64,000 nucleotides of DNA, taken from the NCBI GenBank assembly GCA_029953675.1, contig JAMWBK010000004.1, positions 1,612,001 to 1,676,000 of the forward strand. Direction: 5' to 3'. Positions within the stretch are counted from its first letter, which is position 1, and each line of letters begins with the position of its first letter. Position numbers and translations under genes: made by a program. Under the pieces are notes generated by a model, which saw only the letters and a program-made list of their open reading frames with translations, did no database searches and was not told where the DNA came from. This DNA is from Rhodosorus marinus CCMP1338 (lineage: Eukaryota > Plantae > Rhodophyta). Shown in pieces: positions 38,136-45,884 of the stretch.

Positions 38136-39011
38136 ACCTTCACATACCTAGCCGCGAAGCTCGCAACTACTCCGAATGTACACAAAAGCTCGGCCGCATA
38201 AACGCTGCCGCTTTTGGAATCTTCCTATGAATAAACGATGAAAATTCAATCCCTTCATCGCCAAAACTTTTTTGGGTCATCTTCTTCCCTAAAGTTGAGC
38301 TGGACGAGTTTGGGGCCTCGGCGGGCGAACCCGCACAAGTAACTGTTAACCTTTACTCGGCAGCTACCTACTACAACGCAACACTGGTTCTATCACATAT
38401 CTAAGGGGGAAACCCGTGAGCATTTGATCTGCACGATTGGAAGTTGGGTAAACAGGTGACAACTTGATCTTGGCTTGCGGGTAGGCGATGAGATCCCCAC
38501 AAAAAAAAACACACGAAACGGTTCTCTGCTTCGGAATGGTGACCTTTCAAAGTAAGGCAAGAGGTCGCATAGATACTGGAAGCTGTAACAACTGCTGACT
38601 TGCTCTCCAAGACAATGCGAAAAAAGTGCGTTGATCACTCCCGAGGGACCTCTTTGTATCTGAATTGGATTGTAATGAGGTTTTCAGACAGGGTTTTGAG
38701 TTGGGAAACGGATTTCGGGGATTGTCACGGCCGTTAATAACAACGGATTGATCTTTGCAGAAGGAATCTCTTGCTCGTGAGACCTTGCGAAACTTTTAGA
38801 CTGACTTTTCTGAAGAAGGAAAGTCTTCTGAAGCTGACATGGTTAAAGATGGACGTGTTCTGTAGATAAGTAGGTCCCCACCGAGTGATACTTTTGTTTG
38901 TAGGGTGGGTGGGAGGGTGGTGGTTGGTTGGAGCTGCCTTTTTGTTTGACAAGGCTGGAAAGGCTTTTGGTGTGTGTTTTTTTCTTGGGTTGGAAGAGAT
39001 TGGAGGGAAAG

Positions 39012-41339
39012 ATGAGCTCCACAAATGGAGTAGCGGGAGCCTTGCTGAAGCTGGCGAGGTCGAGGATGACGATTGTATCGGCCGTGACGTACCTATGTGC
39101 ATCGGTGCTTGCCCCCGTTAAGTTTCGGATCTGGGGGTATCTGGCTGGTTACTTGTTCGTCTTCGTGACGCAGCTGCAGACCCATTATCTAGGGGAGTAC
39201 TTTGATAGAGATTCAGATCGCATGAATAGGTACTCAGGTGGCTTGACAGGAGGCAGCGGAGCCCTGCGCGACAGCGTCTACGAAAAACTAGCGCTTTACG
39301 GTGGCATTTTTCTGACGTTGCTATCAGCGACCATAATCTACACGATCCTACCTGCCGAGGTTCGGCCACTGGCTCTGGTAATGCTGATATTCGCAAATCA
39401 GTACTCGAGTCCCCCGCTCATCTTGAACCACAGAGCGCTTGGGGAAATCACCGCTACGACTATCTCGAATTTCCTCCTGCCAACGTTTGCGTACATGGTT
39501 CAGATCTCCGGCCAAGAAGAATTCGACTGGTGGACCCTCTGGTACAACTACAAACTGCTTATCGTTCCCCCGGCGCTTCTAAAAGTGTGCCTGTTCCTCG
39601 TGCTGAATATGAACGATCGGAGAGCAGACTGGCAGGGACACAAGACTACCATCCCCGTCCTTTTGGACGAGGCTAACTCCGCCAAACTGCATCTTGTACT
39701 CAGCGGGTTGGCGTACCTCGCGGCTGTGGTGAGCACGGACTATCACCGGCCCCGTGAGATCATCGGTATGGTTCTGGTGGAGGCCACATTCCCCCTGAGT
39801 CTGATCATATCCAGGAAGCTACTTTTTGAGAGAGAATTCCGGCTTGCGAATATGGTCAAGCTCTCCTTTCTGCACGCGCCGCTGCCGGTTAACCTGCTGC
39901 TTCTCAACGGCTTGGTCTGGCGAGCGATCGATTGGTCTGACGCGATCTTCCCAATGATGATGACCGCCATCTACATCTACCTGCAGGCAAGTCCGCTTCT
40001 GGCGCTCGCAGTCAGCGTGGAATCGGCGAGTGAACAAAGGCCGCCAGAAGTGGAATGGATAAACGAAGATTCAAAAGTGATCCTTGTGGGCGCTGGACTA
40101 AGTGGACTGTCCATGGCCCTGTTCCTGAGTCATATGCACGTTCCGTTCGTGGTCATTGAGGAGAGGACTCCGGAGGAGGTGTTGGGTGGGGCCTGCTGTT
40201 CTCTGTGGTCGCCGGCGATTAAAGCTCTAGAGGAGGCCGGGCTGCTGCACCACTTTTGGGAAGAAAAGTCCAGAATCATCAGTGGATTGGAGATTATCGA
40301 CGACAAGAATAAGTGCTCAACGGTGAGCATTGGAGATATTGTCGGCGATTCCAACACGGAGGGCTTTGTCCTGATCTCGAGGTCTTCTCTGATCGAGGCT
40401 ATGAGGGTCCTTGTCCCTCGAGGCAGGATTCATTATGGACAGAAGCTTACTGATCTGAAGATGGAAGCAGACAGGGTCGTTTTGAAGTCATCCACGGTAG
40501 TGGAAGATGGTGAAAGCGAGATGGAGTTCACTGGGCGTGTTGTCGTTGGATGCGACGGCGCACATTCCGTAACAAGGAAGCACTTGTTTGGGGATGAGGA
40601 GCTGAGTTTCCAGTACGAGGTGGCGCATCGAGGGGAAATTGAGTGTTCTGATGAATCCAGTGCTCGTTTAAAGCAGCTCATGAGCCGTAGCTCTGAGGAT
40701 GCGGTGCTCACGATCAAACACAAGCATGGCCTTGAGTACTCAGCCGGGTTTCTGAATTCTGAAGAAAATCGAATATACTGGTTTGTTAGACAGCCGAGCC
40801 TTATTCGGGCTGAGGAGATGACGCCGTTCTCTATAGAGCAGTGCGTCTCTGCGTGGACTCCGGCCTTGAGGGAGTGCTTTGCTCAGACAGATCCCGCGCT
40901 TCGAACCGTTTATTCCATAGACGATGCAAAGAGATTGCAGCGTCTGAGCTCAGATCGAGGAGTGTTAATTGGCGATGCGGCGCACCCTGTGACGGCGAAC
41001 ATGATGGAAGGTGCGAGCCTCTCTGTAGAAGATGCGCTAACGCTGGCAGTGCTTTTGAGGGACTACGTTGCCTATGAAGACGGCCATGTCGAGGCATTCT
41101 ACAAGTTTGAGCGAAGGAGGCAGCGTTACATCCGAGCTGCTGCGGTACAGGCCAAGCGAATGATGAACAATCGAATCGGCAGCTTGTTACCAGCGACGCT
41201 TGTTAAAATACTACCGGAGATGCCCCCCTCAGAATCCTTAAAGCGTAGTCTGCGGCAGACCAAGATCGCCCAGGTGGATGATCTGATCGCCAGACTGAGT
41301 GACTATCACACCGAAAAACAGCCTCTGCTGTCACCGTAG
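39012..41339 (+). CDS. fusion protein: MenA/UBIAD1-type UbiA prenyltransferase (N-terminal, multi-TM) + class-A FAD-dependent monooxygenase (C-terminal); intronless
   Basis: Single ORF. UbiA motifs THYLGEYFDRDSD..N...TGGSGAL, YSSPPLILNHRALGE, LNMNDRRADWQGHKTTIPVLL. FMO motifs VILVGAGLSG (GxGxxG), VVGCDGAHSVTR (DG), LIGDAAHPVTANMMEGASLSVEDA (GD). Confidence 0.9.
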   Translation: MSSTNGVAGALLKLARSRMTIVSAVTYLCASVLAPVKFRIWGYLAGYLFVFVTQLQTHYLGEYFDRDSDRMNRYSGGLTGGSGALRDSVYEKLALYGGIFLTLLSATIIYTILPAEVRPLALVMLIFANQYSSPPLILNHRALGEITATTISNFLLPTFAYMVQISGQEEFDWWTLWYNYKLLIVPPALLKVCLFLVLNMNDRRADWQGHKTTIPVLLDEANSAKLHLVLSGLAYLAAVVSTDYHRPREIIGMVLVEATFPLSLIISRKLLFEREFRLANMVKLSFLHAPLPVNLLLLNGLVWRAIDWSDAIFPMMMTAIYIYLQASPLLALAVSVESASEQRPPEVEWINEDSKVILVGAGLSGLSMALFLSHMHVPFVVIEERTPEEVLGGACCSLWSPAIKALEEAGLLHHFWEEKSRIISGLEIIDDKNKCSTVSIGDIVGDSNTEGFVLISRSSLIEAMRVLVPRGRIHYGQKLTDLKMEADRVVLKSSTVVEDGESEMEFTGRVVVGCDGAHSVTRKHLFGDEELSFQYEVAHRGEIECSDESSARLKQLMSRSSEDAVLTIKHKHGLEYSAGFLNSEENRIYWFVRQPSLIRAEEMTPFSIEQCVSAWTPALRECFAQTDPALRTVYSIDDAKRLQRLSSDRGVLIGDAAHPVTANMMEGASLSVEDALTLAVLLRDYVAYEDGHVEAFYKFERRRQRYIRAAAVQAKRMMNNRIGSLLPATLVKILPEMPPSESLKRSLRQTKIAQVDDLIARLSDYHTEKQPLLSP

Positions 41340-42181
41340 CCGAGCCCTAATGCGTCGACGGTGAACGCAAGGCGCTCCGAGAAAGAGCGCTGGATGGGAA
41401 AGCAGAATGGAAGCTTGTAGTTTATGCATCAAGAGCTACAGGTGCACAGCTGCGGGTGTACTAAATAACCAAGTAGCAGCTGGGACCGAATAGAATCTCC
41501 GGAATACCGGTCACTATTGTAAGGCCGTGATTACTACTCACCGCTCACATGCGTCAATTGTTGAACAAGAATATAATCTATTTGATGAAGAAAGGAAGAT
41601 CGCCCATAAATTGTACGAAGCGAACTGGAAATGATGATTGTCCATCCAGTTTCATTTACTTTTTGAGTTGAAATCGGTGTGGAGAGGGCCTGGTGAGTAA
41701 GCTGTTGCCCGATGGACACGACAGCTGAGAGCAGGGGTTTGCAGAACCTGAACATATCGTGGCGCTTGAGTTGCATATCTTAAGCTCGCTTCCGAAGCAT
41801 CCACTTCCGTCGAATCTTTTGATAATCCGCTGGGTGAGAATCTCTGTGCTTACAGACCTCCATTTATTCCTGCTCCGAACCACAACAGGAGTAAAAGCGA
41901 AAAACGGAGCTGAACCTACCCACCGACGAAGGAGAAGAGGAAAGAACGTCGTATCAAAAGTCGTCCAGCACAGAACCAGGGCTTGCGTATACAGCGCGGA
42001 GACTCGTTCATTCAAAAACTAAGAAACGAACGAAACAAAAAGAGACCAACCTCAAAAACGCCGACCGCCCACTTCAATACAGAACAACCCGAATATACAT
42101 CATACCGCTACTCGAGAGAAAACAAACACGAGAGGGTGAACGAGTACCACTCCACGTCAGGGACAAGAAGAGCGGCTGAAC

Positions 42182-43035
42182 CTTCACCAACCCAAAGGCC
42201 TGTAAACCGAGAAGATATGGGAAGAGAGAGCCCGCGACAAACGTGCGCTTGTTCATTTGTAGAGGGCTTTTGGGTTGGCCGTCCCATCCCACGCTCCCGA
42301 TTGAAAAAAAGAATGGCTCTGATGTTTTTGTTGTAGTTTTATTCCAAAACCAAGAAACGCAGCAGCGCCACAAAAAGCCGCAACCTCGAGCAATCTAGTT
42401 TATTTGATATTTCAATACTGCCGGTATTGTGCCAGCAAATGGAGGATGAGCTATATTTAGATCATAACGAGCGTCGAGCAGGAGAGCGAGAAGTTGGTGC
42501 GATTGTTAGGGCCATAGGGCATGCCGTGTGCAGGTTTCATTAGGGCATAGTTGATAATAAACTCGTTCGTGAAGCAGTTTATAGGGCAATAGGGTTGAGT
42601 CAGCTATAGGGCATGCCCTATGTTGGTCGACAGTTTTTTTAAAATTCATGGATTTCCGTTGTTGATGTCTAAAATTAACTATTTTGAGGTACATTCGCAA
42701 CAATAAAGAGCAAATCATTTCTCTACGAAGCAAACGAATTATTCAACTGAAGTGCTCTATGAGGAGGGAGACCTGCTTTCACGACGCAAGTTAGAGGAAA
42801 AATTGAACCATATCGAAACTACAGACGGATGTGGTGCTCCAAGCACACTTTCACCGACCCAAATGGCCTGTAAACGGAGAAGATATGGGAAGAGAGACCC
42901 CGCGACAAACGTGTGCTTGTTCTTTTGTAGAGGGCAACTTTTGGGTGGCCGTCCCATCCCACCAACCCGCTGGAAATCGAGAACGGCATGATGTTTTCGT
43001 TGTAGTTTTATGCCAAAACCAAGAAACCCAGCGGC
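42182..43035. repeat. diverged ~185-bp direct repeat pair (42182-42365 and 42849-43035)
   Basis: Both copies carry TTCACC.ACCCAAA.GGCCTGTAAAC.GAGAAGATATGGGAAGAGAGA.CCCGCGACAAACGTG.GCTTGTTC...GGCCGTCCCATCCCAC...TTGTAGTTTTAT.CCAAAACCAAGAAAC. Confidence 0.9.
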
Positions 43036-44441: not shown

Positions 44442-45884
44442 ATGTGTGTTGAGCCTGGAGGTGGGGGTGCGAAGAAGACTGTTGTCTTGAACGTGGTGGC
44501 GTTGACGAAGGACTATTTGTCGGAGGAGGACACGCCCAACATGTGGAATTTTACGAACGGAGGAGGGGACGCTGTGAATTTGATGCCCCCGCTTCCGGCT
44601 GTGACTTGCGTATCGCAGGCGACGTATCTGACTGGCGTCAACCCGTCCGAGCACGGAGTTACTGCGAATGGGTATTATGACGAGGAGCTGAAGCAGATTG
44701 TAAATTGGCACCAGAGCGCCGGGAATGTGAAAGCAGAGAGGTTGTACGCTAAACTGAAGAAGGCGGATCCCAACGCAACTGTTTTCGTTCACACGTGGTG
44801 GCATTCCATGTACGACGAGAACATTGACTACTGCGTTACAGTTCGACCGGAGTACTGCTCAAATGGGAAGAAGATTCCAAACTCTTACACAAAGCCACAC
44901 TCGATGAGAGACCAACTTCATCAGAAATTCGGAAAGTACCCACTTCATCGGTTTTGGGGACCGCTAACTAGCATCCAATCGTCCAGGTGGATCGCGAATA
45001 CTGCTATGGAAGTGGATAAAATGCATGATCCGACCCTTACGATGATCTACCTTCCGCACTTGGACTATTCCCTGCAGAAATACGGAACAGACAAGAGAAT
45101 GAAACACGTAAAAGAGGATCTTAAAATGATTGACGAAGTGGTAGGCGATCTCGTCAGCTACTACCGAGGGAAAGAAGCCGAGGTCGTGATTCTCTCCGAG
45201 TATGGTATATCGCCCGTCACTCGTGCTGTGGATATCAATCGCGTTTTACGAAAGGCCGGCTATATTTCAGTCATAAAGGAACGACAGGGTGAAACTCTGG
45301 ACTACGGAGCGAGCAGAGCCTTTGCTACTGTGGAGCATCAGGTAGCACATGTTCACGTGAACGATAAGACTGCCACTGAGGACGTTAGAAAGCTCCTTTT
45401 GGGTGTCGATGGTATTGCGAAGGTTCTTTCGGAGAGTGAGATGGACCAGACTTACCACGCAGGCAGATGCGGGGACCTCCTCTGCGTAGCTGAACCGGAT
45501 TCATGGTTTACATATTATTTCTGGGAGGAAGAGAAGATGGCACCAGATTACGCTCACTGCGTTGACATACACACGAAGCCTGGCTACGATCCAACGGAGA
45601 TGTTCCTCCGATTCGATAAGCCGGTTCAGCTGTTCGGGTTGATTCATCTCGTTTTCAAAGCCGTGCTCTCACAATTGGTGGGGATACGCACTCTCGTAGA
45701 TGCCACTCCAACTGAAAGGGCGTCAGAAATCCGCGGATCCCATGGAACACTTCCAACTGAGGAGAAATACATGCCACTTTTGTCGAATAGAACAATACGT
45801 GAACTCGTCGGTCATGATAGATCCGTGCCAGTGCCGGCAACGGACGTTTGCAGTCTATTAATGAAAGTCTTGCTTGGAAAGTGA
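44442..45884 (+). CDS. alkaline-phosphatase-superfamily nucleotide pyrophosphatase/phosphodiesterase, EboF-like (bacterial type); intronless
   Basis: KTVVLNVVALT, PLPAVTCVSQATYLTG..PSEHGVTANGYY, NWHQS, YPLHRFWGP..SIQSSRWIA, IYLPHLDYSLQKYG, ILSEYGI, SRAFA..EHQVAHVHVN, WFTYYFW...APDYAHCVDIHTKPGYDP.E, IRGSHG. This pattern matches the EboF-type family I recall from bacterial ebo clusters. Confidence 0.85.
   Translation: MCVEPGGGGAKKTVVLNVVALTKDYLSEEDTPNMWNFTNGGGDAVNLMPPLPAVTCVSQATYLTGVNPSEHGVTANGYYDEELKQIVNWHQSAGNVKAERLYAKLKKADPNATVFVHTWWHSMYDENIDYCVTVRPEYCSNGKKIPNSYTKPHSMRDQLHQKFGKYPLHRFWGPLTSIQSSRWIANTAMEVDKMHDPTLTMIYLPHLDYSLQKYGTDKRMKHVKEDLKMIDEVVGDLVSYYRGKEAEVVILSEYGISPVTRAVDINRVLRKAGYISVIKERQGETLDYGASRAFATVEHQVAHVHVNDKTATEDVRKLLLGVDGIAKVLSESEMDQTYHAGRCGDLLCVAEPDSWFTYYFWEEEKMAPDYAHCVDIHTKPGYDPTEMFLRFDKPVQLFGLIHLVFKAVLSQLVGIRTLVDATPTERASEIRGSHGTLPTEEKYMPLLSNRTIRELVGHDRSVPVPATDVCSLLMKVLLGK

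Follow-up and report, generated by a model that had tools for sequence, protein, structure and literature searches.

A patchily distributed eukaryotic fusion of a UbiA-superfamily membrane domain with a class A flavoprotein monooxygenase, encoded beside an EboF orthologue in the red alga Rhodosorus marinus

Among redox lipids and signals, prenylated quinones and meroterpenoids hold a central place. In several fungal pathways a discrete UbiA prenyltransferase and a flavoprotein monooxygenase (FMO) of the VibMO1 type together make a prenylhydroquinone, with the two steps taken in either order (PMC12720273). The described pairs, namely VibMO1 and its prenyltransferase, PanE/PanI, AtyB/AtyG and BisJ/BisD, combine the prenylation of a p-hydroxy aromatic acid or hydroquinone with an FAD-dependent (decarboxylative) ring hydroxylation (PMC12720273), and are separate proteins encoded in dikaryan gene clusters. 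Here we describe a gene of the unicellular red alga Rhodosorus marinus (class Stylonematophyceae) that unites the same two enzyme classes in one polypeptide. It was found in a stretch of 64,000 nucleotides (hereafter the window; strain CCMP1338, contig JAMWBK010000004.1, positions 1,612,001 to 1,676,000) of assembly GCA_029953675.1, which holds the identical protein; the coordinates of its features are collected in Table 1. By analogy, the fungal pairs are the closest known functional counterpart of this fusion, which differs from them in being a single chain, in its extra transmembrane (TM) helix and in the UbiA subfamily that it draws on, and which is best filed as a covalent version of their two-enzyme logic in a new UbiA subfamily. 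We posit, with a probability of roughly 55%, that it is a bifunctional membrane enzyme that prenylates a phenolic acid or a quinol and then hydroxylates the ring. Next to it lies an EboF orthologue, and this pairing is repeated in Plasmodiophora brassicae.

The fusion gene is real and expressed and encodes a single polypeptide. One uninterrupted forward frame extends from 38928 to 41339 in the open reading frame (ORF) listing, and its first ATG, at 39012, opens a protein of 775 residues. A 3863-nucleotide transcript from another R. marinus strain encodes a 775-residue protein that is 90% identical without gaps, and it aligns with window positions 38704-42169 as one collinear block that covers the UbiA/FMO junction; the gene is therefore without introns and its mRNA spans both domains. 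Purifying selection acts on both halves, the Nei-Gojobori dN/dS ratio between the two strains being 0.21 in the UbiA half, 0.17 in the FMO half and 0.51 in the faster-evolving 13-residue linker between them. We found no point in favor of the fusion being an artefact of assembly or of gene modeling. That idea is refuted by the transcript of the other strain and by the same architecture in the more than 20 genomes described below, which exclude a chimeric assembly. Accordingly, the single, intronless UbiA-FMO frame given in the preliminary description of this locus is retained.

The FMO half matches FAD_binding_3 (PF01494) above the Pfam cut-off at residues 354-684 (E=9e-20). Taken alone, the N-terminal half of the Rhodosorus protein falls just under the gathering cut-off of the UbiA model (PF01040; residues 25-255, E=1.7e-7, 31.2 as opposed to 34.2 bits); its assignment is nevertheless secure because 47 of 49 relatives match PF01040 (best E=2e-28) and because the family profile matches the structure of UBIAD1. 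It also has the polytopic, all-helical membrane fold and the two Asp-rich motifs of that superfamily. We scored motif invariance on an alignment of 22 full-length fusion orthologues. The motifs already picked out in the preliminary description, HYLGEYFDRDSD and NMNDRRADWQGHKTT in the membrane domain and GxGxxG, DG and GD in the FMO, are all present with their key residues invariant; the last three occur within the one FAD_binding_3 domain and mark it as a class A FMO. Six residues of the Asp-rich motifs (D65, D69, D202, D206, K211 and T213) stay invariant when 25 further relatives are set beside the 22 fusions. An AlphaFold2 model built from the 22-sequence alignment (mean pLDDT 82, pTM 0.82) is a confident two-domain fold, in which about ten membrane helices are followed by a low-confidence linker of approximately 15-20 residues, the FMO fold and the C-terminal helices, an order with which the hydropathy concurs. 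Because the number of TM helices is even, the standard topology of UbiA proteins would place the FMO on the same side of the membrane as the Asp-rich loops, and the C-terminal helices may also associate with the membrane. Aligned with the bacterial proteins, the fusion shows no additional N-terminal segment, a point against its being targeted to an organelle.

Beyond Rhodosorus, the fusion proved to be widespread. An exhaustive HMMER scan with residues 1-350 of the query against 1.84 billion representative proteins recovered 581 matches. The best 30 or so are mostly 730-960 residues long with UbiA at the N-terminus and FMO at the C-terminus, while a few shorter entries look truncated; their FMO halves match that of Rhodosorus at E-values of 1e-25 to 1e-50. 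The same N-to-C architecture occurs in at least 30 sequence clusters at 50% identity and in more than 20 independent genomes, among zoosporic fungi (Hyaloraphidium curvatum, Paraphysoderma sedebokerense, Blastocladiella emersonii, Catenaria anguillulae and Sorochytrium milnesiophthora), an amoebozoan (Planoprotostelium fungivorum), Plasmodiophora brassicae, PX-clade ochrophytes (Choristocarpus tenellus and Phaeothamnion confervicola) and Rhodosorus itself. A word-index protein search, run with the full protein and also with the 22-sequence alignment, returned only the query and would on its own have misled us into reporting no homologues. The annotation of the named members goes no further than hypothetical or ‘FAD-binding domain-containing’ in any case, and a literature search by accession, locus tag and concept found no paper characterizing the family. 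Thus, the earlier statement that no characterized member could be named agrees with our search, whereas the uniqueness that it implied for the fusion is contradicted by the breadth of the family. It had also raised a horizontal origin. A recent bacterial transfer into Rhodosorus alone is rejected as unlikely because orthologues are widespread and contain introns in other lineages (Choristocarpus, Planoprotostelium, Blastocladiella and Paraphysoderma); the fusion is rather an old eukaryotic gene with a patchy distribution across several supergroups. It is plausible that the gene came from bacteria long ago and was then inherited patchily or passed between eukaryotes.

The UbiA domain falls in a separate subfamily that has no model of its own and that lies toward MenA/UBIAD1 within the superfamily; it is not MenA, UbiA/Coq2 or EboC. 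The name ‘MenA’, which it had been given, is not justified: the best MenA model, NF004753, gives 33 bits where the cut-off is 555, the others give 26-28 bits where it is 264-289, and TIGR00751 does not match at all. ChlG and the remaining NCBIfam models likewise reach at most 33 bits (cut-offs 264-555), and 91 stand-alone relatives gave no match to the NCBIfam models at 1e-25. In a comparison of the family profile with solved structures, human UBIAD1 is nearest (8djk, E=2e-20), followed by chlorophyll synthase and DGGGP synthase. The signature of the family is (N/G)-E-x-x-D-x-x-x-D and a (T/S)GGS(R)xL loop, followed by N-x-x-D-x-x-x-D-x-x-x-G-K-x-T; the last pattern is common to UBIAD1 and MenA, whereas the first motif and the loop set the fusion apart from them, as do its ten rather than nine helices and the fused FMO. 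With respect to EboC, two representatives reach 14.1 and -5.4 bits with the fusion-clade profile, and BLASTP gives no significant match. Ubi-297 (PMC9235831), which we considered as a characterized relative, was rejected, as it is an EboC and hence of a different subfamily. One could still suppose that the protein is a genuine MenA, or a Coq2-Coq6-type enzyme, which serves to make phylloquinone or ubiquinone and was fused by chance, given that the MenA models are the best, if weak, NCBIfam matches and that UBIAD1 is the nearest solved structure. Against this stand the scores just given, the FMO half, the lack of a targeting extension and the presence of the protein in plastid-less heterotrophs together with its absence from most eukaryotes. 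An assignment of the FMO to UbiH/Coq6 or HpxO fares no better, as it scores 50.3 bits against the 224.65-bit cut-off of TIGR01988 (UbiH/UbiF/Coq6) and 96.8 against 500 for the HpxO model NF033623, and approaches no equivalog threshold. We hold such a role in quinone biosynthesis to be very improbable.

The closest stand-alone homologues of the UbiA domain are bacterial. Scanning the species genomes of GTDB with eight of the closer sequences yielded 80 loci in myxobacteria, cyanobacteria, actinomycetes, Bacteroidota and others. In 30 of them a gene for 4-hydroxyphenylpyruvate dioxygenase (HPPD) lies within 6 kb of the UbiA gene, mostly adjacent and co-directional, and among the top 20 loci by fusion-clade profile score (19 of the 80 and the metagenome-contig relative L003), half are linked to HPPD. 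The HPPD beside L003 is bona fide, scoring 355 bits against the 277-bit cut-off of the 4HPPD equivalog model. Against the fusion-clade profile, proteins of this HPPD-linked ‘GGS-motif’ family reach 119-187 bits, and they have the same invariant residues. They differ from the fusion in standing alone at 300-360 residues, in having the canonical Asn in motif 1 (N-E-Y-x-D-x-x-x-D) and in their neighbors, which include genes for HPPD, methyltransferases, polyprenyl synthases and cyclases and no EboF; like the fusion, they match no NCBIfam model. In actinomycetes there is a recurrent cluster (Table 1) that encodes HPPD, an acyltransferase_3 protein, UbiA, a polyprenyl synthase, a squalene-hopene-cyclase-like protein and a FAD_binding_3 FMO resembling squalene epoxidase; to judge by its gene content, it looks like an undescribed pathway for homogentisate-derived meroterpenoids, and a literature search on meroterpenoid clusters with HPPD and UbiA found no paper describing it. 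In Nostoc sp. WHI (L011 4607-12335) the order is DAHP synthase, UbiA, HPPD, O-methyltransferase, UbiE-like methyltransferase and prephenate dehydrogenase, and the locus looks like a self-contained shikimate-to-prenylquinol cluster with a non-canonical candidate homogentisate prenyltransferase; HPPD also adjoins the UbiA gene at four more cyanobacterial loci (L009, L010, L012 and L015), where HPPD was the only neighbor checked. On a metagenome contig (L005 1-3615) a stand-alone relative lies in a prenyl-lipid context, where its gene follows those for an ABC1/UbiB-like kinase and for a lipocalin-fold protein resembling CrtC/AsqO. Other members of the subfamily (P0089, P0095 and P0120) carry N-terminal fusions to a UbiE-like methyltransferase, a quinone-reductase-like domain (Flavodoxin_2/FMN_red) or an ICMT-like domain. 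Together, the bacterial contexts suggest that homogentisate-type or quinol acceptors are prenylated to give meroterpenoids or prenylquinones, and by analogy the same may hold for the eukaryotic fusion. We favor an aromatic prenyl transfer because of the UBIAD1 match, the HPPD-linked relatives and the fusions to quinone-reductase- and UbiE-like domains.

Whether judged by sequence, by profile or by fold, the FMO half has its nearest solved relatives in NicC, the tropone 2-monooxygenase TrlE, HpxO, PhqK, salicylate hydroxylase, PhzS, VibMO1, TropB, AfoD and vanillate 1-hydroxylase, several of which are decarboxylative ring hydroxylases. NicC, HpxO, PhzS and PHBH superimpose with TM-scores of 0.7-0.8 on the target. 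The family profile also reaches the structure of VibMO1 (8gsm, E=3e-32), which Foldseek recovers as well, though NicC, TrlE and HpxO score better. It is because of these relatives and the fungal UbiA/VibMO1-type pairs that we favor hydroxylation of the ring. The prenylate-then-oxidize route to a (hydro)quinone or meroterpenoid, as first suggested for this gene, fits these discrete pairs as well as the HPPD, polyprenyl synthase, terpene cyclase and methyltransferase neighbors of the bacterial relatives. The Rhodosorus FMO and its nearest relative, P0004, depart from the family at residues 393-399, 536-541 (GEVCYRG to YEVAHRG) and 661-667; these deviations are kept in both Rhodosorus strains and are under purifying selection, and an altered handling of cofactor or substrate is possible.

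Two other assignments of the FMO step have to be set against ring hydroxylation after prenylation. First, the FMO might epoxidize a double bond of the prenyl chain and so prime its cyclization to a chromanol or cyclic meroterpenoid, in the manner of XimD-, PaxM- or Pyr5-type steps. The actinomycete clusters, in which UbiA relatives occur together with squalene-epoxidase-like FMOs and squalene-hopene-cyclase-like proteins, and the epoxidases PhqK, CtdE and FqzB among the fold relatives would suit such a step. Yet the fused FMO is not orthologous to the actinomycete enzymes (phmmer, no match at 1e-5), its best sequence relatives are ring hydroxylases and no cyclase is encoded nearby at the eukaryotic loci examined, making chain epoxidation unlikely in our view. 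Second, the order might be reversed, with the FMO producing the acceptor, such as a hydroquinone made from 4-hydroxybenzoate or another hydroxybenzoate by decarboxylative hydroxylation, and the UbiA domain then prenylating the quinol. In the panepoxydone pathway, PanI, a homologue of VibMO1, takes free 4-hydroxybenzoate as its substrate, while the prenyl acceptor of PanE is hydroquinone (PMC12720273); reduced quinols are also the substrates of UBIAD1 and MenA-type enzymes, and a quinone-reductase-like domain is among those fused to the same UbiA subfamily. On the other hand, tethering a soluble FMO to a membrane enzyme is most sensible if the substrate of the FMO is itself membrane-bound, and the HPPD-linked relatives imply a ready-made supply of acceptor. 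Accordingly, we give the reversed order the same low standing as chain epoxidation.

If prenylation does come first, the UbiA domain would bind Mg2+ and a prenyl diphosphate via its two Asp-rich loops, ionize the diphosphate and alkylate a phenolic acid or quinol, for which homogentisate, 4-hydroxybenzoate or a hydroquinone would be the most plausible candidates by analogy with the relatives. The tenth helix would bring the chain back to the face of the membrane on which the active site lies (the cytosolic one), where the short linker would tether the FMO. Using FAD, NAD(P)H and O2, this class A enzyme would then hydroxylate the ring of the product, which is lipid-soluble and bound to the membrane, perhaps removing a carboxyl group as well, and yield a prenylated hydroquinone or a quinone-type compound. 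The EboF-type phosphoesterase encoded nearby is probably part of this pathway, with a phosphorylated donor, acceptor or product, be it an ester or an anhydride, as its substrate.

The ebo connection rests on the gene 3.1 kb downstream of the fusion, the most informative context of the locus, which the preliminary description had missed. Its product is a PF01663 protein (E=6e-52) that is 39-42% identical (E ~1e-123) to the EboF proteins encoded by the terminal genes of canonical ebo operons on Aureibacter and Deinococcus plasmids, and it is an EboF by both domain and orthology. In P. brassicae the gene directly upstream of the fusion orthologue (CEO97976) encodes a PF01663 protein of 480 residues (CEO97977, the consecutive accession) that is 43% identical to the Rhodosorus EboF (E=5e-108). 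The bacterial ebo operon (eboA-F) has been linked to the export of a scytonemin precursor, with the UbiA-like EboC working with EboF; more recently, a 2026 preprint tied it to thallusin biosynthesis, in which EboC farnesylates hydroxyquinolines and the reaction of EboF was left open. Yurchenko et al. (2016; Table S3, PMC5133447) listed both CEO97977 and a R. marinus transcript as EboF and assigned the two to a main eukaryotic EboF clade that comprises Stylonematophyceae, PX-clade ochrophytes and Plasmodiophora. They reported eboA, eboB, eboD and eboE to be absent from these eukaryotes and concluded that eukaryotic EboF is independent of other Ebo proteins (PMC5133447). The published EboF taxa overlap with those of the fusion in Rhodosorus, brown algae, Phaeothamnion and Plasmodiophora, and Hyaloraphidium curvatum carries both genes. 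Thus, the Rhodosorus locus resembles the ebo operon in that a gene for a UbiA-superfamily prenyltransferase adjoins that for EboF, but its UbiA domain is not EboC and an FMO is present instead of eboA, eboB, eboD and eboE.

This resemblance raises the question of whether the UbiA domain acts on an aromatic compound at all. It could prenylate a phosphorylated non-aromatic acceptor, from which EboF removes the phosphate, or be a UbiA-type terpene cyclase, with the FMO oxidizing the resulting terpenoid. The partnership with EboF recalls the ebo operon, in which the acceptor comes from sugar-phosphate chemistry; UbiA-type cyclases exist and are mentioned in the 2026 preprint, and motif 1 of the fusion is atypical (G-E-x-x-D). 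Nevertheless, the fusion profile is far closer to the HPPD-linked family than to EboC by the scores given above, and in the HPPD-linked clusters the remaining genes suggest chemistry on aromatic quinols, so that we deem non-aromatic chemistry improbable, less likely than either chain epoxidation or a reversed order. The EboF pairing in two distant eukaryotes suggests an undescribed pathway for a prenylated aromatic compound. More tentatively, and with rather more doubt than belief, we propose that the UbiA-FMO fusion and EboF form a eukaryotic two-gene module, at least the EboF half of which is bacterial, that has spread or been patchily kept in red algae, PX-clade ochrophytes, Plasmodiophora and zoosporic fungi and that makes a novel prenylated aromatic, either a new prenylquinone or a thallusin-like signaling meroterpenoid. 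Were this so, the general role of EboF would be to serve UbiA-type prenyltransferases, the ‘orphan’ eukaryotic eboF genes of 2016 would be explained and a handle on the biochemistry of EboF would be gained.

Several observations weigh against a bifunctional prenylating and ring-hydroxylating enzyme with EboF as its partner. With regard to the membrane domain, the fusion clade has Gly in motif 1 where the canonical Asn is expected. The bacterial relatives are only 25-30% identical to the fusion, which makes homogentisate an acceptor by analogy; the 50 of the 80 loci that lack HPPD have no conserved or informative neighbors, and the partner FMO of the actinomycete clusters is, as noted, not the fused one. 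With regard to the FMO, the catalytic His47 of NicC is not conserved, being Ala in the family consensus and Ser in Rhodosorus; the solved relatives include the indole epoxidases PhqK, CtdE and FqzB; and the Rhodosorus protein deviates from the family consensus at several conserved stretches, with GACCSLWSP in place of GADLALWP (residues 393-399) and, just downstream of the GD motif, ANMMEG(A) in place of PNMGQG(A). Finally, EboF adjoins the fusion in just two of the seven fusion loci with flanking sequence (Rhodosorus and Plasmodiophora): none lies beside it in Planoprotostelium, Blastocladiella, Paraphysoderma, Choristocarpus and one further contig, and at the EboF locus of Tribonema, the only one checked from the EboF side, there is no fusion gene within 10 kb. 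The linkage of the fusion and EboF is hence suggestive and not universal.

In no organism has a product been assigned to the fusion family, whose carriers include Plasmodiophora, a crop pathogen, as well as brown and red algae and fungi that diverged early. As a catalyst for prenylated hydroquinones, a covalent prenyltransferase-monooxygenase would be compact and transferable, and the fusion together with its HPPD-linked bacterial relatives defines a UbiA subfamily outside the curated models. Through its linkage to the fusion, the eukaryotic EboF clade, earlier thought to act alone, gains a first genomic partner; the linkage also connects this clade to the ebo/thallusin field and makes the question of the EboF reaction testable with two genes.

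Table 1. Coordinates of the fusion gene, its domains and motifs, and the associated loci (window positions unless a contig is named; TM, transmembrane; FMO, flavoprotein monooxygenase)
Feature	Position	Strand	Basis or remark
UbiA-FMO fusion coding sequence, complete, intronless (775 aa + stop)	39012..41339	+	ORF, Pfam, transcript
5' untranslated region, at least 308 nt	38704..39011	+	transcript positions 188-489, collinear upstream of ATG
UbiA-superfamily membrane domain, aa 1-340, ~10 predicted TM helices	39012..40031	+	Pfam, UBIAD1 profile match, AlphaFold2 helices, hydropathy
Asp-rich motif 1, HYLGEYFDRDSD, aa 58-69	39183..39218	+	G61, D65, D69 invariant in fusion clade
Asp-rich motif 2, NMNDRRADWQGHKTT, aa 199-213	39606..39650	+	N199, D202, D206, K211, T213 invariant
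Tenth TM helix (aa ~312-338) and short fast-evolving linker (aa ~339-353)	39945..40070	+	AlphaFold2 secondary structure, low pLDDT, dN/dS
Class A FMO domain, aa 354-720	40071..41171	+	Pfam, profile, fold matches
GxGxxG dinucleotide-binding motif, G360/G362/G365	40089..40106	+	alignment
DG motif GCDGAHS, D515-G516 invariant	40548..40568	+	alignment
GD motif GDAAHP, G654, D655, H658 invariant	40971..40988	+	alignment
C-terminal helices, aa 728-775; R731, P739, L747 family-conserved	41193..41336	+	alignment, AlphaFold2
3' untranslated region, ~0.83 kb, possibly reaching ~42416	41340..42169	+	transcript
EboF orthologue, intronless, 480 aa, PF01663 (alkaline-phosphatase superfamily), candidate pathway partner	44442..45884	+	Pfam, identity to operon-encoded EboF, published table
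EboF-fusion pairing	window 44442-45884; L088 7918-9532	+ (window)	
Actinomycete cluster, example	L059 3335-11521		Streptomyces sp. NRRL F-6131
Actinomycete clusters, similar	L018, L026, L036-L038, L048, L057, L064, L066, L067, L069, L084		

The transcript of the other strain has a 3' untranslated region of unusual length, approximately 0.8-1.0 kb (window 41340-42416), that is collinear with the genome; we found neither an ORF nor an Rfam family inside it, and no Rfam families around the fusion gene. The neighboring genes had been described as heavily spliced in contrast to the fusion. This is true of the Peptidase_M16 and EMC1 genes, with approximately 1.1 and 1.4 kb of intron, respectively, but is overstated as a general contrast: the Cupin_8 gene has only about 95 bp, or roughly one short intron, and the next gene downstream, that of EboF, is as intronless as the fusion.

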